Source: Selaginella moellendorffii | Taxonomy: Eukaryota; Plantae; Lycopodiophyta | NCBI RefSeq assembly: GCF_000143415.4 | Contig: NW_003314452.1 | Coordinates: 1 to 64,000, forward strand | DNA length: 64,000 nucleotides | Direction of reading: 5' to 3' | In this document: positions 7,222 through 59,518 of the stretch, in pieces | Numbering within the stretch: the first letter of the stretch is position 1 | How the letters are laid out: the number at the start of each line of letters is the position of its first letter | Made by a program: the position numbers and the translations under genes | Notes under the pieces: model-generated | The model's database searches: none | What the model was told of the DNA's origin: nothing | Seen by the model: only the letters and a program-made list of their open reading frames with translations

Positions 7222-8580
7222 TCACCAAACAGATTGCCAGGCAGGATCGCAGAGGATGTCGCGCGCGGATGGACGCTGGTCGCGTCTTGCTGCGACCAGC
7301 TCCAACACCTTGGGCGCAATTGATGGGTGTTGGTACGCCCAGTCTGCTGGTAAAACGCCATCCCGGACGTCAATCAATACCGACTCCCTTTCCTACACAG
7401 ATTCACCGAACTAAGCAAGCACGTTGCACAAACTGCAGCCAAACCTGGTCCGGGGGACACCTCCAATGAAGTTCGAAGAGTATAACTCCAAGCGCAAGCA
7501 TGTCAGTGTAGGTTGAGTTGCTCCGGCGCTGGGGAGAGTAGTAAACTGCTCTCCCCTTCTTGATATTTTCGGTCTCGAGCATGGACTCCTTATTTTTAGC
7601 TGTAAGCCAACAAATGAGAGATGGAAGAGATGTTTCATTTGCCTACCAAGACCGAAATCTCCCAGCTTGATGCGTCCATCGTCTGTGACGAAGATGTTGT
7701 GTGGTGCTATATCCCGATGAACACCCACGTTGTCGTGCACATGCGCCACAGCTTGAAGAAGCTGCCTAAACGCATCTGCAGGTGGTGACTCACCGCCGAG
7801 GAGCACCGACTGGAGCGAGCGGCCACAAAACTCCATGACAATGTACACTTTCGACTTGCCCGGCTCGCCTTCCTCCTTCCACATGTCGAAGTATTCGACT
7901 ATGTTGGGGTGTTCGCAGCGCTGGAGCATCTCTCCCTCCTTGAAGACGAGCGCGACATCCTGGTCTCTGGACTTCGTTGCTGTGCGAACCTTGATGACTT
8001 TGATGGCGTAGATTTGTTCGTCCTCCTTGCTACGGCACTTGTATACTTTCCCGGACGCCCCCTGGCCAACACAAGCGAGCACTTCGTAGCTGCTGCAGAA
8101 GCGGCCTGGACAAGAGAGACAAGGGGCCACTCAGAAGCGAAAAGATGCCAAAGAGACAAATTATTGTATCCACCTGCTGCTGCAACTGGAGTCTCCCCTC
8201 CCTTTTGGATCGATTCCACGATCCCGGTCACAACATTCGCCGAGAGCATCTTGAATCTCTCCAAGCGTTGCGCCATTGCGAGGAATTGCCGAACATATTC
8301 TGCAAGTCATGAATCAAACCAGCAAAGAGTCGTGTCAGCCAACAAAAGGAATTCCTCGTACCAGCGTCAGGAGCAGCCTGCAACGCGGATGCATCATGAT
8401 CAGTTTCTCCTGCTCCTGCTTCAACGAGGATCTTCATCAGACAAGTGCAGATGTTTCAAGTTTTGACCAACCTGATCGAGCTCGGTTAATCGGATCCAGT
8501 GGGCGGGTCCTTTCGAGCATGACGTCGGATCGCTTCTGAGTGTGTAGTTTCTTCGGACCAGCAGCTCTCTTCCTCTCCAT
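7222..8580 (-). CDS. Spliced Ser/Thr kinase, stand-alone GCN2/eIF2alpha-kinase-like domain, about 357 aa (intact copy)
   Basis: Manual GT-AG model with coding exons 8580-8472, 8415-8362, 8299-8174, 8105-7647, 7599-7445 and 7392-7222 (1074 nt, open frame, introns 47-68 nt). Motifs GQGASG, YAIK, HPNIVEYFDMW, VYIVMEFC, FRQLLQAVAHVH, HRDIAPHNIF, IKLGDFGLAK, YYSPQ, DMLALGVILFEL, ERESVL..G.LP..W and RPSARDIL. Probable 5' UTR exon ending at donor 8783/8782. Confidence 0.85.
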
Positions 8581-9000
8581 GGTGGACTCTGGTCAGTGTT
8601 AACATTGTGAGTCGTTGCTGAAAGCACAAAAGAGATTGAGGAGTCGTTACTGCACTTATCCAACGGCTGGAGCCTAGAATGCGCACATCAGCTGTCCGTC
8701 AATGGATTCACAACAAACTTGCTACAATTGCATGCTCCTTCCGCCTCGCCAACAGTAGGCCGCAAACCAGCAGCGCACTCACCTCTGCCCTTGCCAGACG
8801 ATCACGGCAGCCCTAGATTTGGAATCTAAGCTGCATTGAGGATCGACGCGCTCCTCCGGCTCCCTTGGGCTTTGCCAATAGTAGGGTACAAGAATACAAA
8901 AGGCCAAGTCGGATAGAGTTTAGGGCAGACGTGGCACCTTTGGTCACCTTTTGTGGCCCTTCTTCACTTCCACGGAATACGAGTCATTTTTTAGGGTATC

Positions 9001-9581
9001 ATGAAGAAGACACTCATTCTCGATCTAGACAATACACTGGTATACGCTCATAAGGATCTCGTCTCTTCTGTAGATTTCAGCATGGAATTCAATGATGATG
9101 CACCACTCCACATCATGAAGAGACCAGGCGTAGATGAATTTCTGGGGAAGGTTTCAAAAGTGTACGATATCGTAGTGCCGCCCAGGAGAAGTATGTCAAC
9201 CTTGTGGTTGACCATCTGGATCCTACTGGGGGGCTTGTGTCGAGGAGGCTACATGGTGGCAATTGCGTTGTTCTAAAGGACGGGACGAAAGTCAAGAATC
9301 TTGACCATGTAGGGTTTCGGGATTTCAAGCGGGTGGTGGCACTGGATGACATTATTGACTTCTACCAAGGTCATCAAGAGAGCGTGGTGGTGGCTCCAAA
9401 GTTTGAGGGGTCAAAGGATGACCACTTCTTGGCAGATGTAACCCCGTTCCTTCTTGCGCTGTCAAAGTGTGTGGATTTTACCAAAGTTACCCATCGCTGG
9501 AATATTGGACAATGTGTGGAGAAGCAAGGCAAATTGTACGTCCTAGATCCATTCGATGATGAATGGGTTGTTTTAAACTGA
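9001..9581 (+). pseudogene. SCP/FCP1-like phosphatase B, copy 1, frameshifted
   Basis: 7-bp deletion (tggtgtt) at about 9172 relative to copies 2 and 3 (581 vs 588 bp) splits the ORF. Confidence 0.9.
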
Positions 9582-9991
9582 TTATTGTATTTTGTAATAA
9601 ATGTTATAATTTTTCTGCCAAAGTGTAGTTTATGCAAATGAATCTTAGTGAACTTTTGAGCTTAGGATTTCCTACATGTCTCATGTAAAACAAAATGGCA
9701 AAACAAGAAAAACAGCACACCAAATTTTCAAGCTCTTTTGCCAAGGAAATCCCCTTTACATTGAGAGCCCACAGCTTTGCAACACCCCATGAACACCAAT
9801 AGGAGCACGTGCCCACCTCAAACAACAAGCGAGACTTCAAAAAGGACATCACTGATCCAACATTTGATGCCGGAGGATAAGATGCTTAGAAGACTGATTG
9901 CTTCTGAGTTCTTTTATGTCTGTTGTTTAGTGCCTATGTGAAGCTATTGACAAAAATGTGATGATCCATATGAAGCTCTTCACAGGATCAT

Positions 9992-9992
<1 letters not shown>

Positions 9993-10026
<34 letters not shown>
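9993..10026 (+). repeat. (GA)n microsatellite upstream of the PPR; (CT)n tracts also at about 4464-4488 and 6657-6673 and in the paralogues
   Basis: Directly visible; length differs among copies. Confidence 0.95.
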
Positions 10027-10160
10027 AAGTGTCTTTGGCATGACATCCAGCGAAGTAGCAAGAGGAGTGATCGCGGTGCCTCCTGCAGGCATCTCCACGC
10101 CAAATCGCGACTCTTCTGCACCAATGTGGTGATTCCAAGTCCCTCCCACGAGGGAAGCTC

Positions 10161-11007
10161 TTGCACCGCCGCCTGGCCGCCACCCTCGACCTACGCCACC
10201 ACCCCTTGTTCAGCAATCTCCTCATCCTCATGTATGGCAAGTGCTCCAGCCTCCCGGACGCATGGTCCGTCTTCCACGATCTCGTCCACAAGAACGCCTT
10301 CTCCTGTAACATCATGATCTCGACGCTCTGCGCAAACGGCCAGAGCGCGCAAGCGATTCATCTCTTCCTCGCCCTCGCCAGCGATTCAGTCGTCCGCCCC
10401 ACCCACGTCTCGTTCGTCGCCGCGCTCGCCGCCTGCGCCAATTGCCCCGATCTCCAGTCGGGCATCCGGATCCACGCCCAGATCGTCGCCGCGCCACCCG
10501 CGATCGCGAGCAATCCAGTCGTGTGCTGCGCCCTCTTAACCATGTATGGGAAATGCGGCAGCCTGGCAGACGCGCGGAAGGTCTTTGATGACATGCCGCG
10601 CAAGACGATAGTCGCCTGGAGTGCGATGCTGGCTGCTTGCACCAGAAATCCCGATCAGGGCGGGCTCCCCGCTGCGATCGAGCTCTATCGCCAGCTCGGG
10701 GATGCCGGCATCGGTGCGGACTGGAACACTGCGATTGCCGCAAATGCCCATAATGGGCAGTTTAGAGCGGCGATTGCGCTGCTGTGGAAGTTGGATCTGG
10801 AAGGGATCGGGCCTGATATGGTGACGCTGACTGAGATCCTGGCAGCGTGTTCTTGGAAGCAGGATAAAGCACAGGGTATAAAGATCCACGGAGCGTACTT
10901 GCTCGTGTGGCTGGGAGCGTAATGTTGTCGCTGGAACCTCTATCGTCAACATGTATGGAAAGTGTGGCAGAATCAAGGAAGCATCAAGGAAGGAAGCAAG
11001 AATCTAA
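10161..11007 (+). pseudogene. Truncated PLS-class PPR gene, copy 1 (frameshift)
   Basis: MYGKCSSLPDAWSVF and MYGKCGSLADARKVFDDMP motifs; extra G at about 10890; ends mid-motif with no E or DYW domain. Confidence 0.85.
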
Positions 11008-13558
11008 AATTATTTTTTGTTTATCATGGCCTTTATAAAAAAAATTAAAATATTTTTCTTTTCATAATTTATATACCTTTATTTATATGTTGTTATATTC
11101 CATGTAGTTTCAATTTGAACCATTTGCTTTTGTATATAAATTAGAATTTTTGGGATAATTGATATACACATTTTATGTATTCCCTATCCATATTCCATGC
11201 ACTCACATTATTTTATATTTTGTGCACTCACATTGGTGGAGGTGAGGGGCACCTTTGATTATTCTTGAAAAGTGGTTAGATTTGAGATTTTGGTTTAGAT
11301 TTAGCTTTTGCATTGTCTAAATTTAGCTTTTTCCATTTTTTTCTTTTATTCTTTCCTTTTGGCATTTTGGTTTAGATCTAGCTTTTGCATTATTTATATC
11401 TCCCTTTCCTTCTAGCTTTTTTTATTTCATTTCTTTTGCTCTTTCTTTTTCATTCATCTTTATGGTAGAGCAGTAGTCTCTTCCTCCTTTAACTTTGGAA
11501 TAGCATTTTGTACAATTGCTTAATGTTATGTGATTGTAGTTGAACAACCAAACTCAGTTGATGGCAGTATTCATAACACATGGTACAACTCTTATTGCTC
11601 TTGGTGCCAATTCTTATGTTCAACTAGAGTTCTTTTATGGGAATCTTTAGGGACAATGTATACTATTGGTTCAATCACTTCATAGTGATTGCCATATATC
11701 ATTCTTGGGATGATACTCGATGTTTGTGTGAGTTTCCCACATGTTTCCAAGGGATGGCATTGTAGTGGTATAATGGTTTGAATGTAGCTATTCGTGGGGA
11801 TTAGAGTATTCTTCAAGACGTCTTCAAACACACATTTGGATATGTCAACAATTGTGATGATACTTTCCAACAATTGCATCGTCTTTGTTAAGGACCATCT
11901 AAATTGGTGATGCAATTTAGCATTTGTTTTCATAGCCTTTTGCTTCATGCGGAGCCAAATATGTTGGAGCGGATCAAACTAGGAATGTTGTGGCCAACAC
12001 TTCGTCAAAGTTTTATAGGACTTGTGCATGCACTTGCTCGAACGACCTCTAACAATGCTTTTTGTTTGGCACAACATTATGAGACATTGCCTTTTCCACT
12101 TCTCGCTACACATCTTTTAGCTCCACTTTCTGTGGGAGATGGTATTGTTTCAATGGAGGTTGATGTTACTACTGCTCAGGTTTAAGGACAAGGGTGAGGA
12201 TGTGATCATAGTTGTGATATTCGCTACTGAGCATGTAATGAAGTTGGTCACATTTATCAGTATTGTCAGCGTTTTCCGAATTGGTAGCTTCTATTTCTTG
12301 GGTGGAGACTTTAGCATCAACAATGTCTTGTTGGTATTGTTGCAGTGAAAGGTCTAGACATCGAGATGCATCCAGGAAATGAGGAGTCGTGTGAGTAATG
12401 GAGGGACCTTGCACGAATAAGTCAATGACCCCTTTATCTTTCTTTTGGAAGTATCATCAAAAGGTTCATTCGGCATCAGTTCATCTAGTGTTTGCTTTCC
12501 AAGCTTATTTTTATAACAAAAGGTCTTTTATTATTCTCTTTGTATTGATTCATACATGTTCAAGTTTATCTTCTATTGCTCGACTTGTTGCCATATGTTA
12601 CCACCTATATTTGTGTCATGCAGCAGAGTCAGTTTTCATTCTTTATGGCAATGGCCATACATATGCATATGCACGGGATGAAGTGAATTTAGTTGTGTAT
12701 ATAGGTGATCTTGAACTTGGACTGCAGTCATTGCCAGTGGTGTCGAGTTAAGCTTTTGACTTCATCCTTGGTATGGGCACAATCATGCTAAATGTGACTT
12801 TGAGGCTTCTTCCCCTTGTCTCATACTTCCTTATATTTTATCCATTCCTTTCATTTCGAAACATGTTTGTCCCTTTGCTTCTACTTCTACTTTCATTACT
12901 TTTGTCTCCCTATTATTTCCTTTTATATTTCCGTTTTATTCTGCTTTTCCCTTTTTCAATACCTCGGTTGACAAGCTCATGAAGGAGTATGCCAATCTCT
13001 TTGAGTTTCACCTATCGTCTGGGGCCAAGATTGCTATATGTCATCTGATTCCAACCAGGGATACTCATCCCATCAAAGTTTTTGTTCATCATCAATCACC
13101 CAAAGAGATCAAGATTTTACATGCAAACGTCAAGGAAATGTTGGAAAAGGGTGCTATTCAAAAGTCACGGAGTCCTTGGGCATATGAACCTCATCTTGTG
13201 ACGAAGCCTAATGCGAGTATTCATTTCTACATCGATTATCATTCGTTAAACAAAATGACGATTTTAGATGTGTATCCTCTTCCTCACCTATTGATTTCTT
13301 AGATCATCTAAAAAGAAGTTGTTAGTTCACTAAGTTAGATCTTGCTTCTGGGTAATGGCAAATACTAATGGGCGAAGAAGATATTCCTAAGAATACTTTT
13401 TATACACCATTTAGTTTGTATGAGGTTTTGGTGATTCTGTTTGGTTTGAATAATGCTTTAGCATTTTTCTAACAAATGATGGATGGGGTTCTTTGTGATA
13501 TGTTAAAGGTGATTACTTACTTCATTAGTGATGTTTTGATCCACTCGAAGGGGATATG

Positions 13559-14706
13559 TGTCGCGAATATGACTTCAGGTATCGAAAGTTACCTGTCAGC
13601 TAGTCCTTTCTGATATTCTCACCTTACTGCCACGACAGCAGGAGGTCGGTATTGCTGGACCTTTTATCAGTCCCTCTTGTGCTAGTGGAGTTAACTGGGC
13701 ATTTCGAGTGTACTTAGACCAGATGAGCATAAGGACGGAATTCCTACGTGTTATTAGCTAAGCATACTTAGCCCGGTAAGGAGTTCCCATCTCGTTTTGT
13801 CTTGCACTTGCTAGTGACAAGAACCCTCGCGTATTGAGATTAGTCCCTCAATATCGCTATATGATAGCTTACCGTGTCTGCCAAACACCCTCGCTATCAT
13901 GCCCTTTGTGTTAGTCTCATTTCGGTCCCAAATGCTATTTATGGAAAGTGTTTAGATTCGCTCATTTGGCATATCTACGGAATGTAGAGATCGGCCCGAA
14001 CACAATGGTGTTCGTCCCGTGTCCAAATTCACAATCTAGGGACATTCCATATTTAGTAAGTTTCGAGTTTGTCCCAGAGACTAACTCCTAATACTAAGGG
14101 AGGCTTGGGGTGAAAGCCCAAAGCGTGTGTTCCTCAAGGGGGGGGGGGGCTATGGGGGGTTCCAAATGTATAGTAGGGATAGTGGGTAGGTCGGGCATGG
14201 CCGACCAACCTAAGGCATAGTCTAGCTCCCGCTTGCATGCCTGTCCTTGTTCTGCGTCCGGCTTGGGTCTAAGCCCAAGTTCCATTCCATGCTAGCTGGT
14301 GGAGTACCCATACTCTCACGTTAGGCCACCGGTATGCCAAAATAGCGCCAGGCTCCGTTTGGCTCCGTTTTGCGTGCTGGTCCTGGCATTGGGATGCTGG
14401 TTGCTCTAGGACTGTTCCAAGTCACTCCGGGCCCCTGTCCCTTCGCTCCTTGGGCTATATGCTCGAGAGTTGCTCCGTGGTCCGGTTCCATCACCCCTTG
14501 GTGTCACGCTTGGGAGTTTGGCATCATTCCTTCGTTCAGTGGCCCAAGGCCCTGAACCTCGAGTTCCTGTGGACACGTGGCATGGACACGTGGCATGTGA
14601 CACATGGCATCTGTCACGTGGCACAAAGAGGGTTTAGGTTCCGCTTCGTGGTGTTATCCTATGGTAAATCACCATAGGATAAAGGGTCAAAACCACGTGC
14701 GCTACA
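13559..14706 (+). repeat. 5' LTR (1148 bp)
   Basis: TG...CA ends with a 6/7 terminal inverted repeat; direct repeat at 19715. Confidence 0.93.
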
Positions 14707-14708
14707 TT

Positions 14709-14719
14709 TGGTATCAGAG
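14709..14719 (+). promoter_or_regulatory. Primer binding site (tRNA-iMet)
   Basis: TGGTATCAGAG 2 nt after the LTR end. Confidence 0.93.
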
Positions 14720-17700
14720 AATGAGTCTCAGCGAGTACTATTCAATGAGATTGGGCAACTAGTCTCGTTGCATACGCAGAGATGAAAACGATGATCCGAG
14801 TGGGTACACGTTTGGGTGCAAAGACTTCGCATTGGTTCCTTGGGTATGGATTTGGTTACCTTCTTGTACCGTAATTATGTGAGCTTGCTCTTAGGCTCAT
14901 AAGATGGATTTGAATTGTTCCAATAGCATGAGTTTGCTCTTGGGCTCATGAGTGAGGCACATTAGCAACTCAAGGTTGCACTTTGAGTTGGTAGGATTAA
15001 TGTTAGCCTATTGGTGGTTCCATGAGTGGTTCCAGTGGTTCCATGAGTTATTCCTTGTACCATGGGTGAAAGCAAACCTACCTAGGTTTGCTATGAGTGG
15101 CAAATAGGCTGGTCCGTAGCTGTTTAGCACGGCACTAGTGGATCCTTCCTAGGCATGATTATAATTGGATCAATCAAGATTGTAGGGAATAGTCTATTGG
15201 TTCAAGTAATCATTGCCGTGCTCTCTCATAAACTTTTCTTGGATTGAACTGAAGGCAGTGCGAAAGCAAGCTTGAGGTTTGGTCAAAGATGAAACCGAAA
15301 AGAGAGTCATCGAGGACGGAGGATCAAATACGTAAATCATCTTCTCTTCTTGGAGAGATGATTTGCAACGAGGTGTTAACTCATTGCTTGTGTTCACATC
15401 ATGCAATCAAGAGTCCCTACCTTGATGCATGTTGGAAGTGATGGTCTTACAAGTGGTGAGTTATGGGATGGATAGTGGTGAAACACTAAACCATTTTGTC
15501 TAGGCTCGATATTGGAAGACTTGGGTTGCAATGCTCAATTCTTTTCCGGGGAACCTTGCTATTGCTCCTTGAGTAGCTTAGTGTTGGATTAGTGTTGAGT
15601 TTGGTCGGAAAGAGAGTGGCATGAGCTTGTCCGTGTTGTAAACAAAAGTTAGCGATGTTGGGTGTTGTAAATCTCTATTGGTGGAGTGTGGCATTTATGT
15701 TGCATTTTGTCGAATTGAGTTGGCACTTGATACTCACATAAACTTTTGAAGTAATGACATAAGCATTGCTCATTGCGTTACTCAATTGATGATCAAGTCA
15801 TTATGATGCTTATATCATATCCATGTGATAAAGAGTAATGCGTTTACAAAGTTGCTTGGATAAACGATGATCAACCCCCAACTTGGTTGATGGAGAAGCT
15901 AGTCTACTTGCATGTAGTAGCATTGTAGTAGCTTTGACTGGATTCTCTATAGTGGTCAATTATGCTAAGCTTAAGTTGGTTCCTTGTTTCCTTGAGTTGG
16001 CCCATAAGGTGTTGGAAAGGGTTGTAGCATTCATTTGCTATACCTTGTCGGTTGATCCGTTAGCACTTGGAGTAGATTGTTGGATGGAGAAAATGTGGAG
16101 TTGGGGCATTGACGTCACTAGCACTTGTGTTAGTGGAAGTGGCATTGTTATTTCAAGTGATGAGGAATTTTCCTTAGACCTTGATTTTTCATGTCATTTT
16201 TCTTGTTAGTGTTTTGGCTTCACATTGGATCTTGAAGGTGATTGAAGAAGAGTGTTAGTGCAATATGGATATCCGAAGATGTGGTCTTCGTGATCAAGCC
16301 TTGGATGTTCATTTTGCACTTTACGGATGTCGGTGTTGGATATCGGAAAAATGGGCAAAGATGTTCGATGCTTAAGCATATTGATGGATCATGAGAATTT
16401 GTGTTGAGGTGAACCTATGTGAAGTTGTAGGTAGGAGGAAGTTGGTTGAGTCTTGAAAGTTTGCAATCCTGGACTGAGAGTCATTCTTTCTCTAGGATGG
16501 GAAATTTTCCACAAATTTTCTTAGACTTCTCCAATGGCTGATCTGTTGGTCACTTTGCTCAAAAACCATTCCGTTTTTGTAAGCCAGTACAAACTAGTGA
16601 AGGGGTTGAGTTGACTTCAGTTAACTTAGACCTTGATAGGTAGTTTGTATAATGCGGCCCGAAAGGGATGTTGACTTTTGAGGCTAAAACAATTGAGTTG
16701 GATAGAGTCTAGAGTTGATATCGAAAAGTGGCCGTTGCACTTTTCTCAGAAAGGTGACCCTTGTACCTTTCTTTTGTAGCGTTATGCTTGGTGGCAGGTT
16801 GCATCTTGCATTATGTTAGACTCTATGAGAGTAGTGAGCTCTCACTGATCTTGACTTGGTCTTGGTGGCCATGCGCCTTGGCTGAGGATGGTGATGTCCA
16901 ATTTAGTTGTTTGAGGTTGCGATGTTGGTACCCGTACTATAGCTTTGTCTATGAGGAGGTTGTGTACCAATATGAGTCCATCTCATGGTCTTCACTTTAG
17001 TTTCGACTGAGTGTTGATCATGCATAGCTAGCCTCTTTAAGGCATGTTCAGAGCTATTGACTAAATGCATTAGTGAGCTTATTGCGGTTGAGTTGGATTC
17101 GAGTGGTCATTTAGTTTGTGCTTGTCTATGAACTTTTATCTCGTACCTAGGGTATTATGTTCATGTTGGACAAGTATGTGACTCGATGATATGAGTTGGT
17201 GTTTGGGTCTTGTGAACGCAAGTTGAAGAGTGATTGTTAGTTACTTTGCGACTAGTGATTACTTGTAGACTTCATCAAGGACAGTTGACATTTGCTTTGT
17301 TCGATGATGATTTAGCAGTGATGGGCTTGCTTTACCGGATGGTGTTGCAGAGGATCGTGTCGTTAGACTTGCATAGGTTTTCTATGTTAGTATATCGATT
17401 CTATCTTTGTCGATATCATTTGGTTACGTTTAGTCCGTGGTGTTGGATTTCATTGAGTCTTGGATGTGGTGATTCACTCTTTGATGAAATGTTAATATCT
17501 ATAACTGAGTATTGCTGAAGGATTGGTCTCGGATACTAAGTATAGTATCTTCAACTTTGGTTAGCTTGGTTGCTGGAAAGCTCCGAGTGGTGATTCACTC
17601 TTGCTTTCTTCTAGCTTTGTCCTGATGTTGATGGCATTGAAGTGATGCCTTGTCATTGATATTGTTGATATTGAGATCTGAGTGAAATGAGATATCCTTC

Positions 17701-35643: not shown

Positions 35644-35675
<32 letters not shown>

Positions 35676-42837: not shown

Positions 42838-42839
42838 GT

Positions 42840-42855: not shown

Positions 42856-42936
42856 TTTTTTGCTTTTCTTTTAGCTCGTTTTGATTATTTGATTGCCTTT
42901 GTCTTTTTCCCCCTTTTCTTTTCTTTCTTCTTGCCA

Positions 42937-43908: not shown

Positions 43909-43965
43909 GAGCTGTCTGTTTGGACTCCCCAAATAAAAATCACTTTTCTTCCTTATCAAGCTCCT
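43881..43965 (+). promoter_or_regulatory. -1 ribosomal frameshift signal (G GGA AAC plus H-type pseudoknot)
   Basis: Slippery heptamer at 43881-43887 in the gag frame; stem 1 gtccaaacaga/tctgtttggac (43894-43904/43915-43925); loop aggagct pairs with agctcct at 43959-43965. Confidence 0.85.
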
Positions 43966-47654: not shown

Positions 47655-47665
47655 GGAGGGGGTGC

Positions 47666-48052: not shown

Positions 48053-49699
48053 ATATGCTTAGGAGTTTGATTCTATCATTTTGTTTAGTGGCCTAAGGCC
48101 CTAAAACTTAGGTGTTGCCCTTAGCACACATATCTCAAAAGTTAGGTCTATTCCATTGCTATCCTATAGTAATTAAAATGTGAAAATCATGATTTTGTCT
48201 TAAGCATATGCTAGAAGATAAAGATGATTTTATCTTGAAGCATATGCTAAAAGATAACCATGCAAAGTAAAAGAGGATCCATGACAATCAAAAGGTGGTA
48301 ATATACCCATACAAGCAATAACTTGATAGATATAAAGGAATTCAAAGTGCTCAACCATATGTTGTGTGGCATCAGAATTAATAATAAGAGTAAAAAACAA
48401 CTAATAGTTAATAAAGCACCAGTAACATGAGTATGATTGTGTTGAAAATCCTTAGTTAAAAATAAAATAGGAGAAGATGAGTCATCAATAGTAGTATATG
48501 TCTATTGTTGTTATCTATTAGAACTAGTAGCAATATAAGCTTCAGGGACTTGCCATGGATGAGGAATAACATGAGAAATTGAATAAGTATTATTTAGACG
48601 TTGACAAAAAAATTAGGAAATATGGCCAAAATGATTTTAAATATATAGTAGGGATGGGCGTGGTTGACCAACCTGAAACATCATCTAACTTCTTATTAGG
48701 CATGTTTATTTTTGTTTTATGTTTGGCTTAAGTTTAAGCCCAAACTTTGTACTATATTAGCTGGTGGAATATCTTTATGTTAGGCCACCATTATGCTAAA
48801 ATAGTCCTTTAGCTCCATTTTATGTGATAGTTTTGATATTGAAATGCTAAAAGCTCTATTCCTTATTCCTTTGTTCATTAGCTTTATATATACTCAAGAG
48901 TTTTGTTCATCCCTTTGTTTAGTGGCCAAGGCCCTAAAACTTAGGTGCCACTCTATTGCCATTAGCACATATATATAAGCTTTTAAATTTGGATTTCTCA
49001 TGATGTCACTAACCCCAATACTATTTAAACTTAAGGAAATATTTTAAAACCCTTAACTGATTAAAAAAAAGGGGTGCACTTTTATTTATCCCTTTATATT
49101 TGAACTCTATAGATCAATGTCTCAAATCATTCCCTTTGGTTGTTTATAATTCATTATGTTTCTCTATACAGTTGCAACTCTTTTGACACTATACAAGTCA
49201 AGCCCAACTGGAATAAATTAGACTTGCCAAATGTTAATCTCAACACATGGTATGATTCCTCTAGCTAACTAAACATCAAACCCGAGACCCTTTTAATACC
49301 AAATGTAAACTCCTAAATTTAAATTTTTTGGAAGGTCACCCAATTTAGTTTATTCAAACCCAAGAACACTTAACCTCAAGTATTCCAAGACCTCTAACTG
49401 ATTAAAAAAAAGGTTGCAGTTTTATTTATGGGCCTTTCCCCTTATATTTGAACCTTATATATCATCTCTTGAATCAATTAGAAACAAACACACGAATCAA
49501 TTAGAAACTAACTTGAAACCTTCAATCCCCAAGAAGGTTCATGCAAGTGGTCGTGAGTAAGGATAAACTTGATATTACTAAAATATTCCAAGTCGTGAGA
49601 AAATAGATGTGCATTGGTGATAAACTGGAATACAATAGAGAAGTGCTAACTTTCCCCCTTAACTACTCTTACATGGTGGCAACTACCATTTCTTCATGA

Positions 49700-52130
49700 G
49701 TCATGACTGTCAATTACGGAGCTCTACACTTTCTTTAGAGAGCTGGTCATAACTCTAAAAGGACATATCTTTAGAGTTAGGATTTTGCTCTTTGCAATGG
49801 AGTGTCAAGTTTGAGTCCCTATGGTAACTTGAGTTTTTTGTTTTTTGGTGTGGTAGTATTGGAGAAGCTTGCTTTGTGTTGATGTTTGGCATGTTTATTG
49901 ATGAGTCTTAAAAGATTCATTAGTCTCTAAGTCTTGTTTTTGGTTAAAGTTCTTCAAGTTGTTATTTTTCTTCATATTGTTTTCTTGAGCTTGATTTTTC
50001 TTGGATTTTTGAATTTAAGCTTTATGTTTTTTGATTGTGTTAAGTTTTTGAGCTTGAACTTTGTAAATCTTAAATATGTTGAAATCTTGAGTTTGAGTTT
50101 TCATAGTCTTGATCTCTTGATCTTCATGCTTGTAGTTCTTCTTGATGTTTCGTTCTCGATCTTTAAAATTGAAAACCTTCATTTCTTTTAATGTTGTTTT
50201 TGATAATGTTTGAGTCATATGATTAATATTTCTTGAGCTTGTTAAGGTTGACAGTTTGGAGATGCTCGCCATCGAATGTTGCAATTGTTGCCATTCCTGG
50301 AACTTTAAATTTTTGGATGAGGAATGGTCCTTCCCATCTTGAATTCACTCTCAAGCTAATGTTTTCAATGTTTTTTAGAAACCAGAGTACTTGATCATTG
50401 ATCTTGAATTCTTCATTTTTCTTTAATCTTCTCTTTTTGTTATGGTTGGTTTTTCTTCAAGCTTGAATGGCTTCGAGTGTCCAAATTGCTTATAGTCTTT
50501 CTTCGTTAAGTTTTTTTAGTGTTACTAATCTTTTCTTAATTAATTTTTCTTGGTTGATCTTGTAGTGTATTGCCATTTGCAATGAAGGAACGATGTACTT
50601 CAGTGGTGTTAGGGCTTCTAAGCCATAGGCAAGCTTGAATAGTGTCAAATTTGTTGAAACCTTGTATGTTGTTCAATATACCCATAGGGCATTGTAAATG
50701 TGATTGTCCCAATCTTTCTAATTTGTTTTCATTATTTTGTTGAGGATGTTGTTAAGTGTCTTGTTTGTCAACTCTGCTTAACTGTTGCCTTGAGGGTAAT
50801 ATGGTGTTGAAGCCTTATGTTTGTTTCGCTTGAAGCTTGTTATGAGTAGTCCAACGAAGTCGAGTTCCTATCATTGAAATAGTTCCAGTGGTGTTGTTGG
50901 ATGAAGCTTTTGAGTTTGTTTCTTTAGTGTGTACTTGGTTTGTTGACAAATGTCGCATTCTCAACAAAATTTTGCTAAGTTATGCCAAAGTGTTAGCCAC
51001 TAGAGTCCTACTTGCAAAATCTTGTGAGCTGTGATTTCTTCTGTGAAGTGGCCTCTTGCTTGTCCACAGTGGGCTTCTTCGAATAGATCTTGAGTTCTTC
51101 AAATTGTACACATCTTCATAGTACATTGTCTCGTCCTTTTTTGTACAATCTTCCTCCCACAACTGAATATGGTCTTGTCCTTAAGACAAATTATTTATGG
51201 TGATTAGAGATGGAGTATCGATTTAGTGTTATTGTTGTTATGAGGTAGTAGTAGATGTCATTCGTCCATGTTGATGATGTGTGGATGCAAAGTATGTTGG
51301 AGTCAGGAAAGTCATCCATGTTGTATTTTAGTTGTTCACTAGTTATAAGGTTGGCTTATACATGTTCTTTGCCAGGTTTGTGAATAATTTCGAAGTTGTA
51401 TTCTTGAAGTAATAAAAACTATCAAGCAATTCTACGGATGAAGATGGTCTTGTTGAGGAGGTGTAAAAGTGCTTTGTGGTCAACCATGCTCTTGACTTTA
51501 GTGCCGAGTAGGTAGTGTCGAAACTTTTATAGTGTATAGACAATTCCTAAAACTTCTTTTTCAATGGTGGTGTAATTCATCTCAGCTGAGTTGAGTCTTC
51601 AGCTTGTATAGTAGATTGGTCGGTCTTTGAGGTCTTGTTGTGAGAAAGTATTGCTCTGATGGCATAATCAGAGGCATCAATGTGTATTGAAGTCTTTGTC
51701 CTAGTTTGGTTCTTGCTAAGGAATTCTTGAGCATGTCGAATGCTTGTTGGCAATCTTGAGTCTAGTTGTAGACGTGATTTTTCTTCAAAAGATCTATAAG
51801 GGGTTTTGCAATCTTCACATAATCTTTGATGAAGCGTTAATGGCATCCCATTTTGCCGATGAAGGATCGTAGTCCAGTGGTGTTTGTTGGGTGTTGCATA
51901 TTGATGATGGCAAGAGTCTTAGCTTTGTCAATGAGGATGCCTTTTATGCAGATGATGTGTCCAAGTAGGATGCCAGATTTGACGAAGAAGGTAGATTTGT
52001 CAGGGTTTAAGGTGATGTTATTCTCTTGACATTTGATGAAGCATTTCTCAAGATGTTGGGGATGTTATTTTTTGCTACTAAAGATGCTGAAGTCATCCAT
52101 AAAAACTCACATGAAGTTGGTGAGGTAATA
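49700..52130 (-). mobile_element. Degenerate Ty3/Gypsy pol relic, copy 3
   Basis: Paralogue of the above with the IHIDASDYAI RNase H motif; retains an integrase segment (about 50795-51005) deleted in copy 2. Confidence 0.85.
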
Positions 52131-55100
52131 TAGTGCTTTCAATCTTTATTCTACTCTTTCTTCACGCTTACCATGACTCTTCTATTCTAAACAAGTATAT
52201 TGTACATTATCATGTGACTAAGAAGCTACACATGTCTTTTTATTAGTCAAAGATGTGATATGATATTATCCGATATATATATATATAGCTATGTTTAATG
52301 CCAAACTCATAATACTCTTCATGTTACAGAAGGACAATTGGAGTCAATTGTAATTTCCCATCCATTTAAGTTGGTGATGTTGATTTGATAGGGCCTTTTT
52401 CCATAGTCAATTCATGGCAATGAATATATTATTATTGCCTCTAACTACTTGATTCATTGGGTGGAAGCCAGTGCTTTTGATAGTGCACTTGTGACTATTG
52501 TTAAATACTTCTTCCAAAATTGAGTGGTATTCTAGCATTCATGTCTATAGTAGATTCTCTCAAATAAAGTCTCATATTTATAGTTAAGATATTTCACATT
52601 TTAATGTCTTAGCTAAGGATACACAACACTTTCACAAGTGCTTATCATTTATGAACCAATGGTTTGGTATAATAGCTTATTCAGACTTTCAAAAGGATGA
52701 TTAGGATTTAAATTGGGATGATTATTTGCCACTTCTTTAGTATACGTATGGCATAGGGGTACAAAGTTTCATTAGTGCTTCACTATATAAACTTCTATAT
52801 GGTCATGATTTGATATTATCAATGGAGTTGAATTCACCTTTACAATTGCTATGAACTACCAATGCTAAGTCTTAGGATTAGTGTTTGACGAGCATTTTTC
52901 CACTATTCAAGTAGCATTTATTAAACATTTAGTATAGCACACATGGTTTTCACCCTTTATTCTATAGTGATTTATTATAGGATAACTATGAAGCAGAACC
53001 TAAATTTTTTATATGCCACATATCCAAAAACAGCGGAGTGGAACCCGAGTTTTAGGGCCTTAATCCATTAAACAAAGGAATGGAATCAAACTCCCAAGCT
53101 TGCAGCTAAGGAGCGAAGGAACTAGAGTATAGAGCGACTCTTGAGCATTTAGCCCAAGAAGAAAAAGAATAGAAGCATGAAGTGACATAAGAATAGTCCT
53201 AGAGCATCAAATATCCTAATGCCAAGATTAACACACAAAATGGAGCTAAACAGAGCCAAATAAAGTTTAGTGCTATTTTAGCATATCAGTGGCTTAACAC
53301 AAGGATATGGGTACTCCACTAGCTAGTATGGTATAGAACTTGGGTTAAACCGAATGCAAAACAAAAATAGGTATGCAAATAGGAGCTAGAGTATGCCTTA
53401 GGTTAATTGGCCATGCCTGACATACCCACTATCCCTACTACACATTTGGAACCTCGGAAAACATGCTTTAAGTTATCACCCTTAATACCAAGAGTTAGTA
53501 TTTGGAATAAATTTGAAATTTATTTAGTGAATATTAAAGAACCAAGCTCAATATAATGGGGGTTACATATGAGCTTCTCATACAGAGTCGAGTATGCTCA
53601 GCAAGAAACATATAAAAGTTCCTATATTATGTTTATCTAGTATAAGTACATACATGATGACCAGTTTCTCAATTAGCTTGGGTGGAGATTGATAAAGAAT
53701 CTAGCAATACCAACCTCTTGTTGTCGTGGCAGTAAAGAAAAAATATCTGAAATGACTCATTCATAGGTAATTTTCGATACCTACAATCATATTCCCAACA
53801 CTTGAGTTGCATACAAATGGGATAACAATGGTGTTACAACTCCCATCATTGTTAACCTATAGAGTATAAAGCAGATGACCTTATGTTAATTAATCTTCCC
53901 AATCTTATAGTGTATAGTTTGTCTAAATAGCTCCTTACTTATTGGAAGAGACTGTATTAAATGTTGTGGTAAGTTGGATGTAAGCTCTTGAATTTATACT
54001 TCTCGGGAAGTCACCTAACTTAGTACTATTCAAAATATTTCAAGACCCTTAATCAATTAAAAAAAGGGGGTGCACTTTTATTCATGGGCCCTTTCCTCCT
54101 ATATTTGAAGCTTTATAGATTATCTCGCAAATCATCTTTTTTATATTGGACCACAAGTATATGAAGTTTGGCATAACATTCAATAGGTTAATCCTCTAAA
54201 AATTGTGCATATAAAATAGCTAAAATACTTCATACAAAGGGATCATAAATAACTAGCATCTATAGATCCACTAGTTCCTCCACCTAATATTCCTCCAAAT
54301 CCCTATCAACCAAACAATTATAATTACTTTCCTTCCTTCCAAAAGGAGAGGATGATATAAGGTTCAAGTGTATGGTTACAATGCCATTTATATTATTGCC
54401 GTAATGGGATTTTGATAGCCATTGAATTGGTTTCAATTTAGATCACTAATAATTGAATATAAATATTTAACTAATTGAATATGCATATTTTTATATTTTA
54501 TGTCCATATTTCATGCACTTACAGATTTTCTTTTTATTTTGCTTTACAGAGTAAAGTCATATACCTAGATATCTAAATATATTCTTGGATATTCTCTAAT
54601 CTAGGGGCTCTTAAACTTTCTCTAATTAACTTGTAATCAGTGTTTAAAGTTAATTGTCTAACTTATCACTAATCTAAATAATCTATATTGAAAAACTATT
54701 AACACTTATTAACACTAACATGTAACAGAATGCCAATTTAAACCTTAAAAATAAATTTAAAATTAACATCATTAAGCCCTCCACACTCATGGTTTCATTC
54801 TGTAATATAGAGGGCACAAAATCCAGCCGTCTAAGATTGATGGCCTGATGGTTAAACACAAAAGAACTTAAGAGAGTTAAACATTGTTCTAGCTATTTAA
54901 AAACTAAAGACTAGTGGGGACACCATTTCTCACCATTTGTCCTGAAGTGCAATAGCTAGCAATTAACATTATGCAAATGCCTCAATCTAAACAAGTGCCT
55001 AGCCTCATTAGTTGTTATGTTTAGCATTCAAGTATGTTAAGAAATATATTAGAATATACATTGTGATATATTTTAGATAGCACAAAAAATAATTTAAAAG

Positions 55101-55227
55101 AGGAGTAGTGTATTTTAAATAGTACAACAAATTATTTAAAAAGAGTAGTACTCAATGGAATTTAAGGATTGGTTCCTCGAGGTATGGAAGAAACTAGAAA
55201 CCTAGACAGATAAAATTGATGGATCAA

Positions 55228-55264
<37 letters not shown>

Positions 55265-55569
55265 GTTTGTTTCTTTCTATGATTTTGCAGAGTCCTCAAA
55301 AAAAGGTACTTGGCATTGAGGTTCCACCATAGGCAAAAAGAAACTCTGCTGATCTTTTATAGGAAAACGTTTTCCTACAGGCCTTTCTGAATTGAATCCA
55401 CGGAACCTGGAAGTCAAAACAAGAGAGTAGCTTCAGAACACTTAAAAGCTCACCCCTGCAAGTTCTGTTGTGGTGAGTGAATGGTCAAAGGTGCGAATAT
55501 TCTCTCTACAAAAATTTGAATAAGTTTTTCTACATTTCCACGGAATACCGAGTCATTTTTTAGGGTATC

Positions 55570-56065
55570 ATGAAGAAAACACTCATTCTCGATCTAGACA
55601 ATCCACTGGTATACACTCATAAGGATCTCATCTCTTCTGTAGATTTCAGCATGGAATTTGACGATGATGCACCACTCCACATCATGAAGAGATTAGGTGT
55701 AGATGAATTTCTGGGGAAGGTTTCAAATGTGTACGATATCGTGGTGTTTAGTGCCGCCCAGGAGAAGTATGTCAACCTTGTGGTTGACCATCTGGATCCT
55801 ACTCGGAGGCTTGTGTAGAGGAGGCTACATGGTGGCAATTGTGTTGTTCTAAAGGACGGGATGAAAGTCAAGAATCTTGACCATGTAGGGTTTCGGGATT
55901 TCAAGCGGGACTTCTTGGCAGATGTAGCCCCTTTCCTTCTTGCCCTGCCAAAGTGTGTGGACTTTACCGAAGTTACCCATCGCTGGAATATTGGACAATG
56001 TGGAGAAGCAAGGCAAATTGTACGTCCCAGATCCATTCGATGATGAATGGGTTGTGTTTAACTGA
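55570..56065 (+). pseudogene. SCP/FCP1-like phosphatase pseudogene A, copy 3
   Basis: Same lesions as 4798-5293. Confidence 0.93.
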
Positions 56066-56280
56066 TTATTGTATTTTGTAATATATGGTATAATTTGCCC
56101 CCCAATAGTTTATGGAAGTGACTTTCGAGGATTTCCTGCATGTCTTGTGTAAAACAAAATGGTAAAACAAGCCAAAAGAACACCAAGTTTTCAAGCTCTT
56201 CTGCTTCAAAAGTGTATCATCCTAGTAATGAGCTCACAACTTTTTCTTGACCGAGCCTGAAAGAGATTGGAAAAAAAGAG

Positions 56281-56495
56281 CTACCTCCTGGTACTTGATA
56301 CATTAGGCAAACATGAAGGCAAAGAAGACCGGGAAGCCGACCAAGACACCCGCAACAACACCCAAATGTCATGTCGTAGCCAAAGTAACTCTCCACAAAC
56401 GCCTTGACAGTCGTGTATCACGCATTGGGTGTCATGAGGCGCACAAGATCATTTGCATACTGGGATGCGATCCAGCCATACAAATCCAATAGTGA
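56281..56495 (-). pseudogene. PDR/ABCG C-terminal fragment, copy 3
   Basis: Paralogue of 5509-5725. Confidence 0.75.
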
Positions 56496-57980
56496 TCCAC
56501 ATTCTCGGAAAGTCCAAGAAAAAGCAAAAAGCTGTTTATATCCAACTTAGGTTTGGTGGTCAACACTAAACCAAAAACAATGAAGATGAATAGGACGATG
56601 TTATTGTCCCTGCCCTACAAGTATTTTTACGTGTTTTCGTTTGCAGCAGAGGAACCGCGGTACTGAATATCCACATTCTGGTATTGAAATTAAGCTGGTC
56701 ACTTGAGCGATTAGTTTTTAGCTGATCAAAACGGTTGTAATGTACAATGTTTAAATCGTGATTTTCATTTGTGAATACTTTAGTGTTCTTAATTTGGATT
56801 TTCTTTACATTTCGCTTTATAGGTATAAAGAATATACCTAAATATCTAAGTATATTCTAGAATATTCTCTAATCTAGCAACTTTAAAGTTTTCATATAAA
56901 AAACTATGAAGTTCTTTATTTTGCCTCATATCTAGAACTGGAAGAGTATCAAGTAAAATTTGAAAAACTATATAAAACTGAGAAACTCTATATTATCCTA
57001 TAAATTACAAGGATTAACACTGACAAAGAGTCTAAAATTAACATCATTAATCTAGAGGGCACAAAATCCAACTTCTGGACGTGTTTTAAGATTGATGTCA
57101 TGATGGTTAAACACTAAACAACTTAAAAGAGTTAAAGTTTGTTCTAGCTATTTGAAAACTTGCCTCAATCTAACCAAGCACCTAGCTTCATTATTTGTTA
57201 TTCTTTGCATTCAAGTATGCAAAGAAATCAGTGGAATTTAACGATTGGTTCCTCAAGGTATGAAAAAAACAAGAAACCTGGATCAATTCATATATATATA
57301 TTTCTCTCTCTCTCCATTTGACTCTTCCTTTCTATAATTTTGCAGACTCGTCAAAAAAGGGGCTTTGAGGGGGCAAAAAGAAACTCATTCACCCTGTACC
57401 AACAGAACTTGTAGGGGTGAGCTTTTGAGTGTTCTGAAGCTAATCTCTTGTTTTAACTTCCAGGTTCCTTGGATTCAATTCAGAAAGGCCTGTAGGAAAA
57501 CGTTTCCCTGTAAAAAGGTCAACAGGTCAAAGGTGCGAATATTCTCTCTACAAAAATCAACAATCCCGCCATTTTCTTCATCGCATCTCCCGAGAATTGG
57601 GGTAGCTCTCCAGCTTCCACTCGATCTCTGCCCACTTGAGGTGAGATGCATGGACCCTACAAGAAGCCAGCCGTGGACACCACGCTGTTGCATCTCCCGT
57701 CAATGTGCTGTTTACCAATCCTGTTCCTTGAACCGAACCTGACTACAAGAATGTCGGAAGCCCTTGAGTTGTTCAGCAACCTTGATCGAGAACAACTCGG
57801 CCTGGCAGAAATGCAATGAACTGGCAACGAATTCATATTTCTGAATCGAAATCAGCATGCTGAAAAAGACCAAGACTACAAAGATGACAAAAAGGAGCAA
57901 GTAAATCTAAACAACTACAACGATCAGCTGCAAACAGACATGTTAGAAGCCAAGCAGAGAATCAGAGTAATGAAAGAAAC

Positions 57981-58516
57981 TCACCAAACAGATTGCCAGG
58001 CAGGATCGCAGAGGATGTCGCGCGCGGATGGACGCTGGTCGCGTCTTGCTGCGACCAGCTCCAACACCAGAAGCGAAAAGATGCCAAAGAGACAAATTAT
58101 TGTATCCACCTGCTGCTGCAACTGGAGTCTCCCCTCCCTTTTGGATCGATTCCACGATCCCGGTCACAACATTCGCCGAGAGCATCTTGAATCTCTCCAA
58201 GCGTTGCGCCATTGCGAGGAATTGCCGAACATATTCTGCAAGTCATGAATCAAACCAGCAAAGAGTCGTGTCAGCCAACAAAAGGAATTCCTCGTACCAG
58301 CGTCAGGAGCAGCCTGCAACGCGGATGCATCATGATCAGTTTCTCCTGCTCCTGCTTCAACGAGGATCTTCATCAGACAAGTGCAGATGTTTCAAGTTTT
58401 GACCAACCTGATCGAGCTCGGTTAATCGGATCCAGTGGGCGGGTCCTTTCGAGCATGACGTCGGATCGCTTCTGAGTGTGTAGTTTCTTCGGACCAGCAG
58501 CTCTCTTCCTCTCCAT
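57981..58516 (-). pseudogene. GCN2-like kinase, copy 3, catalytic core deleted
   Basis: Junction ccaacac-c-agaagcg at about 58068 removes 823 bp (copy 1 equivalent 7310-8132), i.e. almost the whole kinase domain. Confidence 0.93.
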
Positions 58517-58930
58517 GGTGGACTCTGGTCAGTGTTAACATTGTGAGTCGTTGCTGAAAGCACAAAAGAGATTGAGGAGTCGTTACTGCACTTATCCAAC
58601 GGCTGGAGCCTAGAATGCGCACATCAGCTGTCCGTCAATGGATTCACAACAAACTTGCTACAATTGCATGCTCACCTCCTAACGCCTCGCCAACAGTAGG
58701 CTGCAAACCAGCAGCGCACTCACCTCTGCCCTTGCCAGACGATCACGGCAGCCCTAGATTTGGAATCTAAGCTGCATTGAGGATCGACGCGCTCCTCCGG
58801 CTCCCTTGGGCTTTGCCAATAGTAGGGTACAAGAATACAAACGGCCACGTCGGATAGAGTTTAGGGCAGACGTGGCACCTTTGTGGCCCTTCTTCACTTC
58901 CACGGAATACGAGTCATTTTTTAGGGTATC

Positions 58931-59518
58931 ATGAAGAAGACACTCATTCTCGATCTAGACAATACACTGGTATACGCTCATAAGGATCTCGTCTCTTCTG
59001 TAGATTTCAGCATGGAATTCGACGATGATGCACCACTCCACATCATGAAGAGACCAGGCGTAGATGAATTTCTGGGGAAGGTTTCAAAAGTGTACGATAT
59101 CATGGTGTTTAGTGCCGCCCAGGAGAAGTATGTCAACCTTGTGGTTGACCATCTGGATCCTACTGGGGGGCTTGTGTCGAGGAGGCTACATGGTGGCAAT
59201 TGCGTTGTTCTAAAGGACGGGACGAAAGTCAAGAATCTTGACCATGTAGGGATTCGGGATTTCAAGCGGGTGGTGGCACTGGATGACATTATTGACTTCT
59301 ACCAAGGTCATCAAGAGAGCGTGGTGGTGGCTCCAAAGTTTGAGGGGTCAAAGGATGACCACTTCTTGGCAGATGTAACCCCGTTCCTTCTTGCGCTGTC
59401 AAAGTGTGTGGATTTTACCAAAGTTACCCATCGCTGGAATATTGGACAATGTGTGGAGAAGCAAGGCAAATTGTACGTCCTAGATCCATTCGATGATGAA
59501 TGGGTTGTTTTTAACTGA
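58931..59518 (+). CDS. Intronless SCP/CTDSP-like phosphatase, 195 aa
   Basis: Same motifs intact; only a few amino acid differences from copy 2. Confidence 0.92.
   Translation: MKKTLILDLDNTLVYAHKDLVSSVDFSMEFDDDAPLHIMKRPGVDEFLGKVSKVYDIMVFSAAQEKYVNLVVDHLDPTGGLVSRRLHGGNCVVLKDGTKVKNLDHVGIRDFKRVVALDDIIDFYQGHQESVVVAPKFEGSKDDHFLADVTPFLLALSKCVDFTKVTHRWNIGQCVEKQGKLYVLDPFDDEWVVFN

Follow-up and report, generated by a model that had tools for sequence, protein, structure and literature searches.

Three tandem kinase–phosphatase units

The window analysed here, the whole 64,000-nt stretch of Selaginella moellendorffii DNA at scaffold GL377756.1:1-64000, consists of three tandem units of a segmental duplication, each ~19–25 kb long. 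Self-alignment delimits unit 1 at 1..24820 (with a run of N, marking a gap in the assembly, at 1119-1555), unit 2 at 24821..48608 and unit 3 at 48609..64000, the last continuing beyond the window to scaffold position ~67956, and gives 95–99% identity between unit 1 and units 2 and 3. A fourth unit starts at ~67957 and is followed by an inverted piece, as read via L021 in sequence extending to scaffold position 69518; no intact kinase protein among those checked falls on the remainder of GL377756.1. Every unit carries a minus-strand kinase gene and an intronless SCP/NIF phosphatase gene in a head-to-head, divergent arrangement, as well as an older dead phosphatase paralogue, pseudogene 'A', which the first-pass annotation of this DNA had missed. 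In unit 1 this pseudogene (4798..5290, plus strand) carries an in-frame stop and two deletions, of 87 bp and 2 bp, and its equivalents lie at 30469-30961 in unit 2 and 55570-56062 in unit 3.

Kinase copy 1 (7165..8580, minus strand) is intact, with an uninterrupted coding sequence (CDS) for 358 aa (P0040; NCBI XP_024523518) spread over exons 8580-8472, 8418-8362, 8299-8174, 8105-7647, 7599-7445 and 7392-7226 plus a short seventh terminal exon; RNA joints over the equivalent stretch of copy 2 show its introns. Copy 2 (32805..34220, minus strand) is the same as copy 1 across ~1.7 kb except for a nonsense codon at 33926..33928, a CAA>TAA change (C>T on the minus strand) at codon 60 of the 358-aa isoform or codon 59 of the 357-aa isoform. 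This is the sole CDS difference between the two copies, and the CAA base is kept at this position in 17 of 17 other family loci examined. Copy 3 is a remnant (57924..58516, minus strand) that retains exons 1–3 and at which NCBI called no gene. In the assembly sequence 823 bp are missing at the junction 58068|58069, the equivalent of copy-1 positions 7310-8132; the deletion begins within intron 3, spans exons 4–5 and runs into the first part of exon 6, and it takes away nearly the whole catalytic domain. The first-pass annotation had described the three genes in these terms, and CDS comparison bears it out on the intact copy 1 and the single coding change in copy 2, as does the assembly on the exact length of the copy-3 deletion.

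The phosphatases are damaged in a different unit. B1 (9001..9581, plus strand) has a 7-bp deletion after 9172 that shifts the frame and leaves a 91-aa product, whereas B2 (34645..35232, plus strand) and B3 (58931..59518, plus strand) are each intact at 195 aa, B2 with the DLDNT catalytic motif and four private amino-acid changes. The sequence agrees here too with what had been claimed, and module L003 on another scaffold, GL377738.1, has the identical 7-bp deletion.

The only domain found in the kinase is Pkinase (Pfam, residues 104-350 of 358 aa), with no sensor or regulatory domain. Its best matches among solved structures (PDB) are the eIF2-alpha kinases HRI, PERK, GCN2 and PKR (E 1e-30 to 1e-21), with which it shares an HRD...NIF signature; NCBI names the gene 'eIF2-alpha kinase-like', and NEK (NEK1) and CDPK kinases score nearly as high. 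Unlike the eIF2-alpha kinases, it lacks a stress-sensing domain, has SPQ in place of APE/SPE and, in every copy, has the catalytic loop HRDIAPHN rather than the canonical HRDLKPxN, so that the loop Lys is replaced. With such an atypical loop, the kinase may be weak or inactive. It is also lineage-restricted, the next-best matches outside S. moellendorffii in a protein word search being 28–40% identical.

The phosphatase resembles the SCP1/CTDSP1-type small CTD phosphatases (Pfam NIF, HAD superfamily). Its NIF domain is full length (positions 1-159 of 160, E 3e-36), its DxDx(T/V) nucleophile motif reads DLDNT at residues 8-12 (DLDNP in the 'A' pseudogenes) and its best structural matches are CTDSP1 structures. 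It differs from that type in being a minimal 195-aa, intronless protein gene that has been co-amplified with a kinase and for which the RNA data sets used here show little, if any, transcription.

That at least one of the three lesions is an assembly or sequencing error, a caveat raised in the first-pass annotation, seems to us very unlikely. The scaffold belongs to a Sanger draft and has N gaps, and near-identical repeat units are prone to mis-assembly; against this, the TAA base was read in an independent RNA run, and the 7-bp deletion has its second occurrence in L003. The 823-bp deletion is seen in the assembly, where its junction is clean; no RNA joint across it is listed, and at a share of ~3% few such reads are expected anyway. 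A DNA-like contig (X1) tried as a further check on the lesions turned out to be another family copy (G at 33928, T at 33536) and is silent on this array.

Transcription and the copy-2 stop codon

RNA-seq confirms the spliced kinase gene model, and the mRNA includes the 8580/34220 ATG in a strong context. Whether the exons downstream of the 8580 ATG are coding had been left to transcript data, and the 8580-ATG model is the one seen transcribed. RNA joints and read ends place the spliced 5′ UTR, in copy-2 coordinates, at 34229..34547 (minus strand), with an acceptor at 34228 that sits 8 nt upstream of the ATG. Its exons (~34312-34291 and 34379 to ~34515/34547, minus strand) contain, by an inventory of ATGs, a 7-codon upstream open reading frame (uORF) in a weak context, which is all that precedes the near-perfect context of the upstream ATG, CCACCATGG.

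Because the mRNA carries the 8580/34220 ATG, the copy-2 stop lies within the main open reading frame. The first-pass annotation had conceded that normal initiation at the downstream MAQRL ATG would make this stop harmless. That concession fails in so far as the stop is not in the 5′ UTR, and stands in so far as the in-frame ATG could still yield a 295-aa kinase, which is the protein that NCBI models for copy 2 (P0034, start at 33916). In such a case copy 2 would not be inactivated at all: initiation or re-initiation at the MAQRL ATG, 9 nt past the TAA and in a good context (GCAATGG), would give a product that keeps the entire kinase domain (residues 104-350), and the array would have two working kinases. 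Transcripts with the TAA are also present at about the share of one copy and are thus not obviously cleared by nonsense-mediated decay. Re-initiation after a 59-codon open reading frame across a 9-nt spacer is, however, expected to be inefficient, and the mRNA has the upstream ATG in its near-perfect context with nothing but the 7-codon uORF before it. The lost N terminus, moreover, includes a cluster of basic residues, perhaps a nuclear-localization signal, and the E168 base specific to copies 1 and 2 is scarce in reads (2/163). We infer that most kinase output from copy 2 is lost to the stop, and regard a functional copy 2 as a doubtful alternative, though one to be taken seriously.

The same reads bear on expression of the family as a whole. 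At the copy-2 position, 173 of 178 reads from an unrelated 2026 run have the family base and ~5 of 178 (~2.8%) the TAA base. Other private kinase variants are found at 15.6% (S80, present in 6 of 21 modules), 6.7% (D91, 2 modules) and 6.8% (N171, 2 modules) of reads. These RNA shares roughly match the copy shares, and many kinase copies are therefore expressed.

By contrast, the phosphatase appears nearly silent in the data sets that show the kinase transcribed. Its region (34580-35600) has zero reads in raw RNA run X24, at a kinase depth of ~100–250; it has no contig in data set X17, although the kinase reaches a depth of 380 there; and in data set X15 it is represented by a low-depth contig. 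With no phosphatase reads in two of the three data sets, from unspecified tissues, and a well-expressed kinase family, these data give no support to a coupling of the two doses at the transcript level.

A family of modules across the genome

The two-gene module extends far beyond the window. A search for further copies, which the first-pass annotation had recommended, turned up 18 or more additional modules, spread over 12 other scaffolds and ~99% identical to the window modules over 2.7 kb. The 21 modules compared, those of the window included, are 98.9–99.7% identical over ~2.6 kb. A family of this size, more than 20 copies, had gone unnoticed, and the dose in the window is not the dose in the genome. 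Both genes are intact in 13 of the 17 other-scaffold modules that could be assessed. Three others combine an intact kinase with a broken phosphatase: L003, with the 7-bp deletion of unit 1 (W1); L008, with a frameshift leaving 148 aa; and L010, with a ~5-kb insertion. In L019 the kinase is broken by a 1-bp deletion next to an intact phosphatase, and in L017 it is broken by a 1-bp insertion, the phosphatase lying beyond the scaffold end. The assembly includes both haplotypes (PMC3680112), so some of these modules are allelic; even allowing for this, several intact pairs per haplotype remain.

Losses are roughly balanced between the two genes. Across the family, 4 kinases and 4 phosphatases are broken, each of ~21–22, and at least 16 kinase genes are intact; none of the modules is broken in both genes, where ~0.7 would be expected. 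The disabling lesions are unrelated to one another, comprising the TAA, the 823-bp deletion and the +1 and −1 frameshifts in kinases, and the 7-bp deletion, a frameshift and the 5-kb insertion in phosphatases. Constraint among copies looks weak in either gene: the kinase has a pN/pS of 0.48, from 8 nonsynonymous and 5 synonymous changes, and the phosphatase one of 0.54, from 19 and 10, values that come from small counts and from loci picked by kinase protein identity. The kinase half of the module is homogenized far more than its surroundings. GL377738.1 may be the other haplotype of this array, its modules (L003 and L007) being the closest relatives of those in the window; the identity of the flanks, however, reaches only 93–98%, with a different arrangement to the right of the module. 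We found no paper on this kinase–phosphatase module in the literature.

Complementary losses in the window

No unit in the window keeps both genes, and the first-pass annotation had proposed from this a dose of one kinase to two phosphatases, brought about either by selection on kinase dosage or by reciprocal subfunctionalization, in which each unit comes to depend on the others through complementary losses and the array is thereby locked in place, its collapse leaving an unopposed kinase. If true, the latter reading would make the window a rare example from nature of a tandem array locked by complementary degeneration; if it fails, the finding is an ordinary one of pseudogenes within a redundant family. 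Several lines of evidence point to failure.

First, 13 modules elsewhere in the genome keep both genes; the dose is therefore not 1:2, and with at least 13 intact modules on other scaffolds the array could collapse without leaving a kinase unopposed. Second, modules with an intact kinase and a broken phosphatase recur (W1, L003, L008 and L010), contrary to the idea that a kinase without a neighbouring phosphatase is not tolerated. Third, the RNA data examined show little sign of co-expression of kinase and phosphatase. Finally, the distribution of one lesion per unit, which had been taken as a signal, arises by chance with a probability of 8/20 = 0.4 when three lesions fall on six genes. An array locked by reciprocal loss is thus extremely unlikely. 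The duplication–degeneration–complementation or reciprocal gene loss model of Force and Lynch is defined by one requirement, that complementary copies be indispensable together. The window duplicates resemble that model in having lost different components (the phosphatase is dead in W1, and the kinase is hit in W2 and W3) and depart from it on this very requirement, with both genes kept in 13 other modules.

Selection that lowers kinase dosage, with copies silenced adaptively because excess kinase is harmful, would account for the disabling of two of the three window kinases, and of 4 of ~22 in the family despite very low substitution diversity among kinases. It would also account for the fact that the single base separating copies 1 and 2 in ~1.7 kb creates a stop. 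Since ~3% of random substitutions in this kinase stretch would be nonsense, that difference is a weak hint of selected silencing. Yet at least 16 kinases are intact and their variants appear in RNA roughly by copy number, phosphatases are disabled equally often, and the number of disabling events is about that predicted from 13 point substitutions and the usual share of indels. We therefore consider selection on kinase dosage unlikely.

The module could instead be a selfish poison–antidote element, the kinase acting as poison and the phosphatase as antidote, with copies free to decay as the antidote acts in trans. The tight head-to-head linkage of the genes, the lineage restriction of the kinase and the presence of more than 20 near-identical copies would suit such an element. 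A phosphatase that appears silent where the kinase is expressed would not, nor would the equal frequency of kinase-only and phosphatase-only modules, and with its HRDIAPHN loop the kinase may be weak or inactive. The four poison-only modules (W1, L003, L008 and L010) also count against the element, although an antidote acting in trans would permit them. On balance this origin is highly improbable. We give similarly little credence to a broader version, in which a dosage-sensitive or poison–antidote-like module present in more than 20 copies has its kinase homogenized by gene conversion while selection repeatedly silences single copies, as with the TAA on an otherwise identical 1.7-kb tract, complementary decay then being the outcome of a copy-number conflict.

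Birth-and-death decay in a redundant amplified family, which the first-pass annotation had held in reserve as neutral decay, is the reading favoured by the evidence. It is probably the correct one, with the one-lesion-per-unit pattern a coincidence and neither dosage selection nor an array lock at work. Counting against it, besides the nonsense change in copy 2, damaged units are more frequent in the window (3/3) than elsewhere (5/18), with a hypergeometric p of ~0.04 that is post hoc and comes from a survey skewed toward intact kinases. The window would be part of one array in a segmental-duplication family that was amplified recently and is highly redundant; in it, single copies of either gene are disabled, whether by a nonsense codon, by small frameshifts, by a large deletion or by an insertion. 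Such losses would be tolerated because many intact copies remain, while gene conversion would hold the kinase part nearly uniform; the lesions themselves are presumably selectively neutral.

The family is more notable than the three lesions: a lineage-restricted, kinase-domain-only gene with an atypical loop now exists, alongside a mostly silent SCP-type phosphatase amplified with it, in more than 20 near-identical copies. Plant NLR clusters are an example of birth-and-death evolution, with pseudogenes among functional copies. The family described here resembles such tandem families in its near-identical arrayed paralogues, scattered independent lesions, apparently weak constraint and signs of gene conversion, and differs from NLR clusters in that the repeat is a divergent two-gene module within a 19–25 kb segmental duplication, either partner of which may be lost.

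Three tandem modules, each with one lesion

Self-alignment of positions 1–64000 of the 86,265-bp scaffold GL377756.1 resolves three tandem units, 94–99% identical, that start at 1, 24821 and 48609, with a gap of Ns at 1119–1555. Each unit holds a minus-strand protein kinase gene, its domain interrupted by short introns, head-to-head with a plus-strand, intronless phosphatase gene, B, that lies about 420 bp away, encodes 195 aa of NIF/SCP type (Pfam NIF, E 3e-36) and is followed by a PPR gene. Kinase and phosphatase proteins of the window are 92–97% identical to NCBI models of Selaginella moellendorffii. An older phosphatase paralogue, pseudogene A, sits about 4.2 kb upstream of B in every unit (4798–5290, 30469–30961 and 55570–56062). 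All three copies of A carry the same in-frame stop, 87-bp deletion and 2-bp deletion, with DLDNP instead of DLDNT, indicating that A died before the units duplicated; A is homologous to the live copy from about 45 bp before the ATG onward. Fragments of retrotransposon reverse-transcriptase and integrase-like ORFs lie inside each unit (2043–2285, 12979–13302 and 22116–22394), marking the repeat unit as a composite segmental duplication. Past the window, unit 3 continues to about 67956 and gives way to a fourth unit at about 67957; this stretch (GL377756.1:64001–69518) includes 1121 N and an inverted segment, 68346–69184, that matches window positions 54086–53248. A GC-rich minisatellite at 62421–63017, with about 38 copies of the 12-nt unit GAGTCCGAGATG grading into a GACCGA hexamer array, is found after unit 3 only.

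The three lesions reported in the first-pass annotation are confirmed in every detail. Kinase copy 1 encodes 358 aa without interruption, matching P0040/XP_024523518, and a 7-bp deletion after 9172 in its partner phosphatase, B1, yields a frameshifted 91-aa product. Copy 2 differs from copy 1 by one base in the kinase coding sequence, as had been noted: CAA>TAA at codon 60 (33926–33928). In the assembled sequence, copy 3 lacks exactly 823 bp, the equivalent of 7310–8132 (junction 58068|58069), comprising exons 4 and 5 and the start of exon 6, essentially the entire catalytic domain. Phosphatases B2 and B3 are intact. In an independent 2026 RNA run, position 33928 shows the family base in 173 of 178 reads and the copy-2 TAA base in about 5, and each of the 17 other loci keeps the CAA base, making the stop private, derived and transcribed. 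The 7-bp deletion recurs, with an identical 91-aa product, on scaffold GL377738.1. The single DNA-like contig aligned is from another family copy.

Lesions across the wider family

Ordinary decay, tolerated in single members of a redundant two-gene module, is the best explanation of the lesions in the window, and their reciprocal pattern is best read as coincidence. The family-wide census is decisive here. A 90%-identity kinase cluster contains 17 distinct NCBI proteins over many scaffolds, and exact-protein look-ups placed 18 further modules on 12 scaffolds, all about 99% identical to the 2.7-kb module. Thirteen keep both genes intact (L002, L004–L007, L009, L011–L016 and L020), two of them, L013 and L014, with an in-frame 6-bp phosphatase deletion. 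Three pair an intact kinase with a broken phosphatase: L003, with the 7-bp deletion shared with B1; L008, with a frameshift to 148 aa; and L010, with an insertion of about 5 kb. In L019 a 1-bp deletion in exon 5 breaks the kinase beside an intact phosphatase, and in L017 a 1-bp insertion in exon 4 breaks the kinase while the phosphatase lies beyond the scaffold end. These loci were found through kinase proteins and are biased to intact kinases, so the census may understate how many kinases are broken. Both haplotypes are present in the assembly (PMC3680112), and some modules are therefore alleles; several intact pairs nevertheless remain per haplotype.

The module is highly redundant and was recently amplified. 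Neutral decay, which the first-pass annotation had kept as its fallback, is the reading supported here, and the two selective readings in that annotation are not. Selection limiting kinase dosage had been proposed from a net dose of one kinase to two phosphatases; the genomic dose is not 1:2, given the 13 other modules with both genes, and kinase-only modules occur elsewhere. Reciprocal losses had also been suggested to lock the array in place, as collapse to copy 1 would leave an unopposed kinase, but with intact pairs on other scaffolds such a collapse leaves none.

Of the 20 ways in which three lesions can be distributed over six genes, 8 put one in each unit. Damaged units are more frequent in the window (3/3) than elsewhere (5/18; p ~0.04), in a post hoc comparison with loci biased to intact kinases. 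Both genes have a family-wide pN/pS of about 0.5, calculated from small counts. Apart from the TAA, copies 1 and 2 show no difference over about 1.7 kb, from about 6900 to 8613 (versus 32540–34253), whereas the flanks on both sides show 14–22 events per kb (Fisher 3e-6). Family-wide, with loci L002–L020 included, diversity at silent sites is about 2% for the kinase, against 7.7% for the phosphatase and about 5% for the spacer. Together, the identical tract and the low kinase diversity suggest gene conversion, or some other process that homogenises or lowers mutation, with the expressed kinase gene at its centre. The copy-2 TAA would have arisen after this homogenisation. That the one new change in the tract is a stop, an outcome with a chance of about 3%, is the sole hint that kinase copies were silenced by selection, and a weak one.

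Transcription of the module and output of copy 2

We aligned raw stranded RNA-seq reads (X24) and two RNA contig sets (X15 and X17) to window positions 32500–35600. Every kinase intron is a minus-strand GT..AG joint with 62–180 reads. The copy 1 coding exons (minus strand; 8580–8472, 8418–8362, 8299–8174, 8105–7647, 7599–7445 and 7392–7222/6; locus GL377756.1:7165–8580 by exact-protein look-up) are followed by a short seventh exon found by RNA reads (intron 32809–32865 in copy 2), the source of the Cys that ends the NCBI model, and a NAGNAG acceptor at exon 2 gives 357-aa and 358-aa isoforms. The 5′ UTR (34229–34547, minus) has two introns, the last acceptor preceding the ATG at 34220 by 8 nt, and the 5′ ends of the transcripts lie near 34515–34547. 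Alternative splicing joins 34228 to 34291, 34296 or 34379, and most reads lack 5 nt that copy 2 has at 34375. The earlier model with exons from the 8580 ATG is thus the transcribed form, and the mRNA carries the upstream MERKR ATG (context CCACCATGG), which disposes of a normal start at MAQRL, the downstream ATG that would have made the copy-2 stop harmless. The only earlier ATG in the spliced leader starts a 7-codon uORF in weak context. NCBI models of kinase paralogues (P0005, P0006) likewise start MERKRAAGPKK and contain the segment EYVRQFLAMAQRL.

Many kinase copies are expressed, as private variants of other copies appear in RNA at roughly copy share: S80 in 15.6% of reads (6/21 modules), D91 in 6.7%, N171 in 6.8% and synonymous A65 in 7.2% (2/21 modules each). 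The E168 base common to copies 1 and 2 is found in 2 of 163 reads, indicating that the window array adds little kinase RNA. The phosphatase region, 34580–35600, has zero reads on both strands in X24 and no contig in X17, where the kinase reaches a depth of 380; X15 yields just one low-depth contig of 339 nt. In X24 and X17 the two divergent genes show no co-expression, and the X24, X17 and X15 samples give no sign of a kinase:phosphatase balance at the transcript level. The phosphatase gene starts just 100–130 bp or so from the kinase transcript start. Two NCBI models, P0042 (L015) and P0045 (GL377612.1), join the phosphatase to PPR and 2OG-oxygenase sequence that lies downstream (288 and 347 aa); they are probably chimeric predictions, because phosphatase transcription was not seen.

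The copy-2 stop cuts the main ORF after 59 codons, 9 nt before the in-frame MAQRL ATG (GCAATGG), from which NCBI models a 295-aa protein (P0034); the kinase domain spans residues 104–350. TAA transcripts make up about one copy's share of kinase RNA, and strong nonsense-mediated decay is therefore not evident. What is generally understood of scanning and re-initiation leads us to infer that copy-2 kinase output is much reduced, though not necessarily abolished. Residues 1–20 (8580–8521, minus; MERKRAAGPKKLHTQKRS) hold a basic cluster, RKR...KKLHTQKR, that resembles a bipartite nuclear-localisation signal and could be one; a product begun at MAQRL would be without it.

Nature of the two proteins

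By sequence, the phosphatase, which has the motif DLDNT, is a minimal SCP1-like enzyme of canonical type. The best solved-structure relatives of the kinase are HRI, PERK, GCN2 and PKR, with NEK1 and CDPKs scoring nearly as high; it resembles in its working, or descends from, an eIF2-alpha-type kinase domain, a likeness that does not establish membership of that functional family. Unlike the eIF2-alpha kinases, it has no regulatory domain, and the HRDIAPHN of every family copy (residues ~225–232; window ~7715–7690, minus) leaves the catalytic loop without its Lys. This protein may be a weak or atypical kinase, or a pseudokinase. All family copies also have YYSPQ, with SPQ for APE/SPE, at residues ~290–294 (window ~7535–7520, minus).
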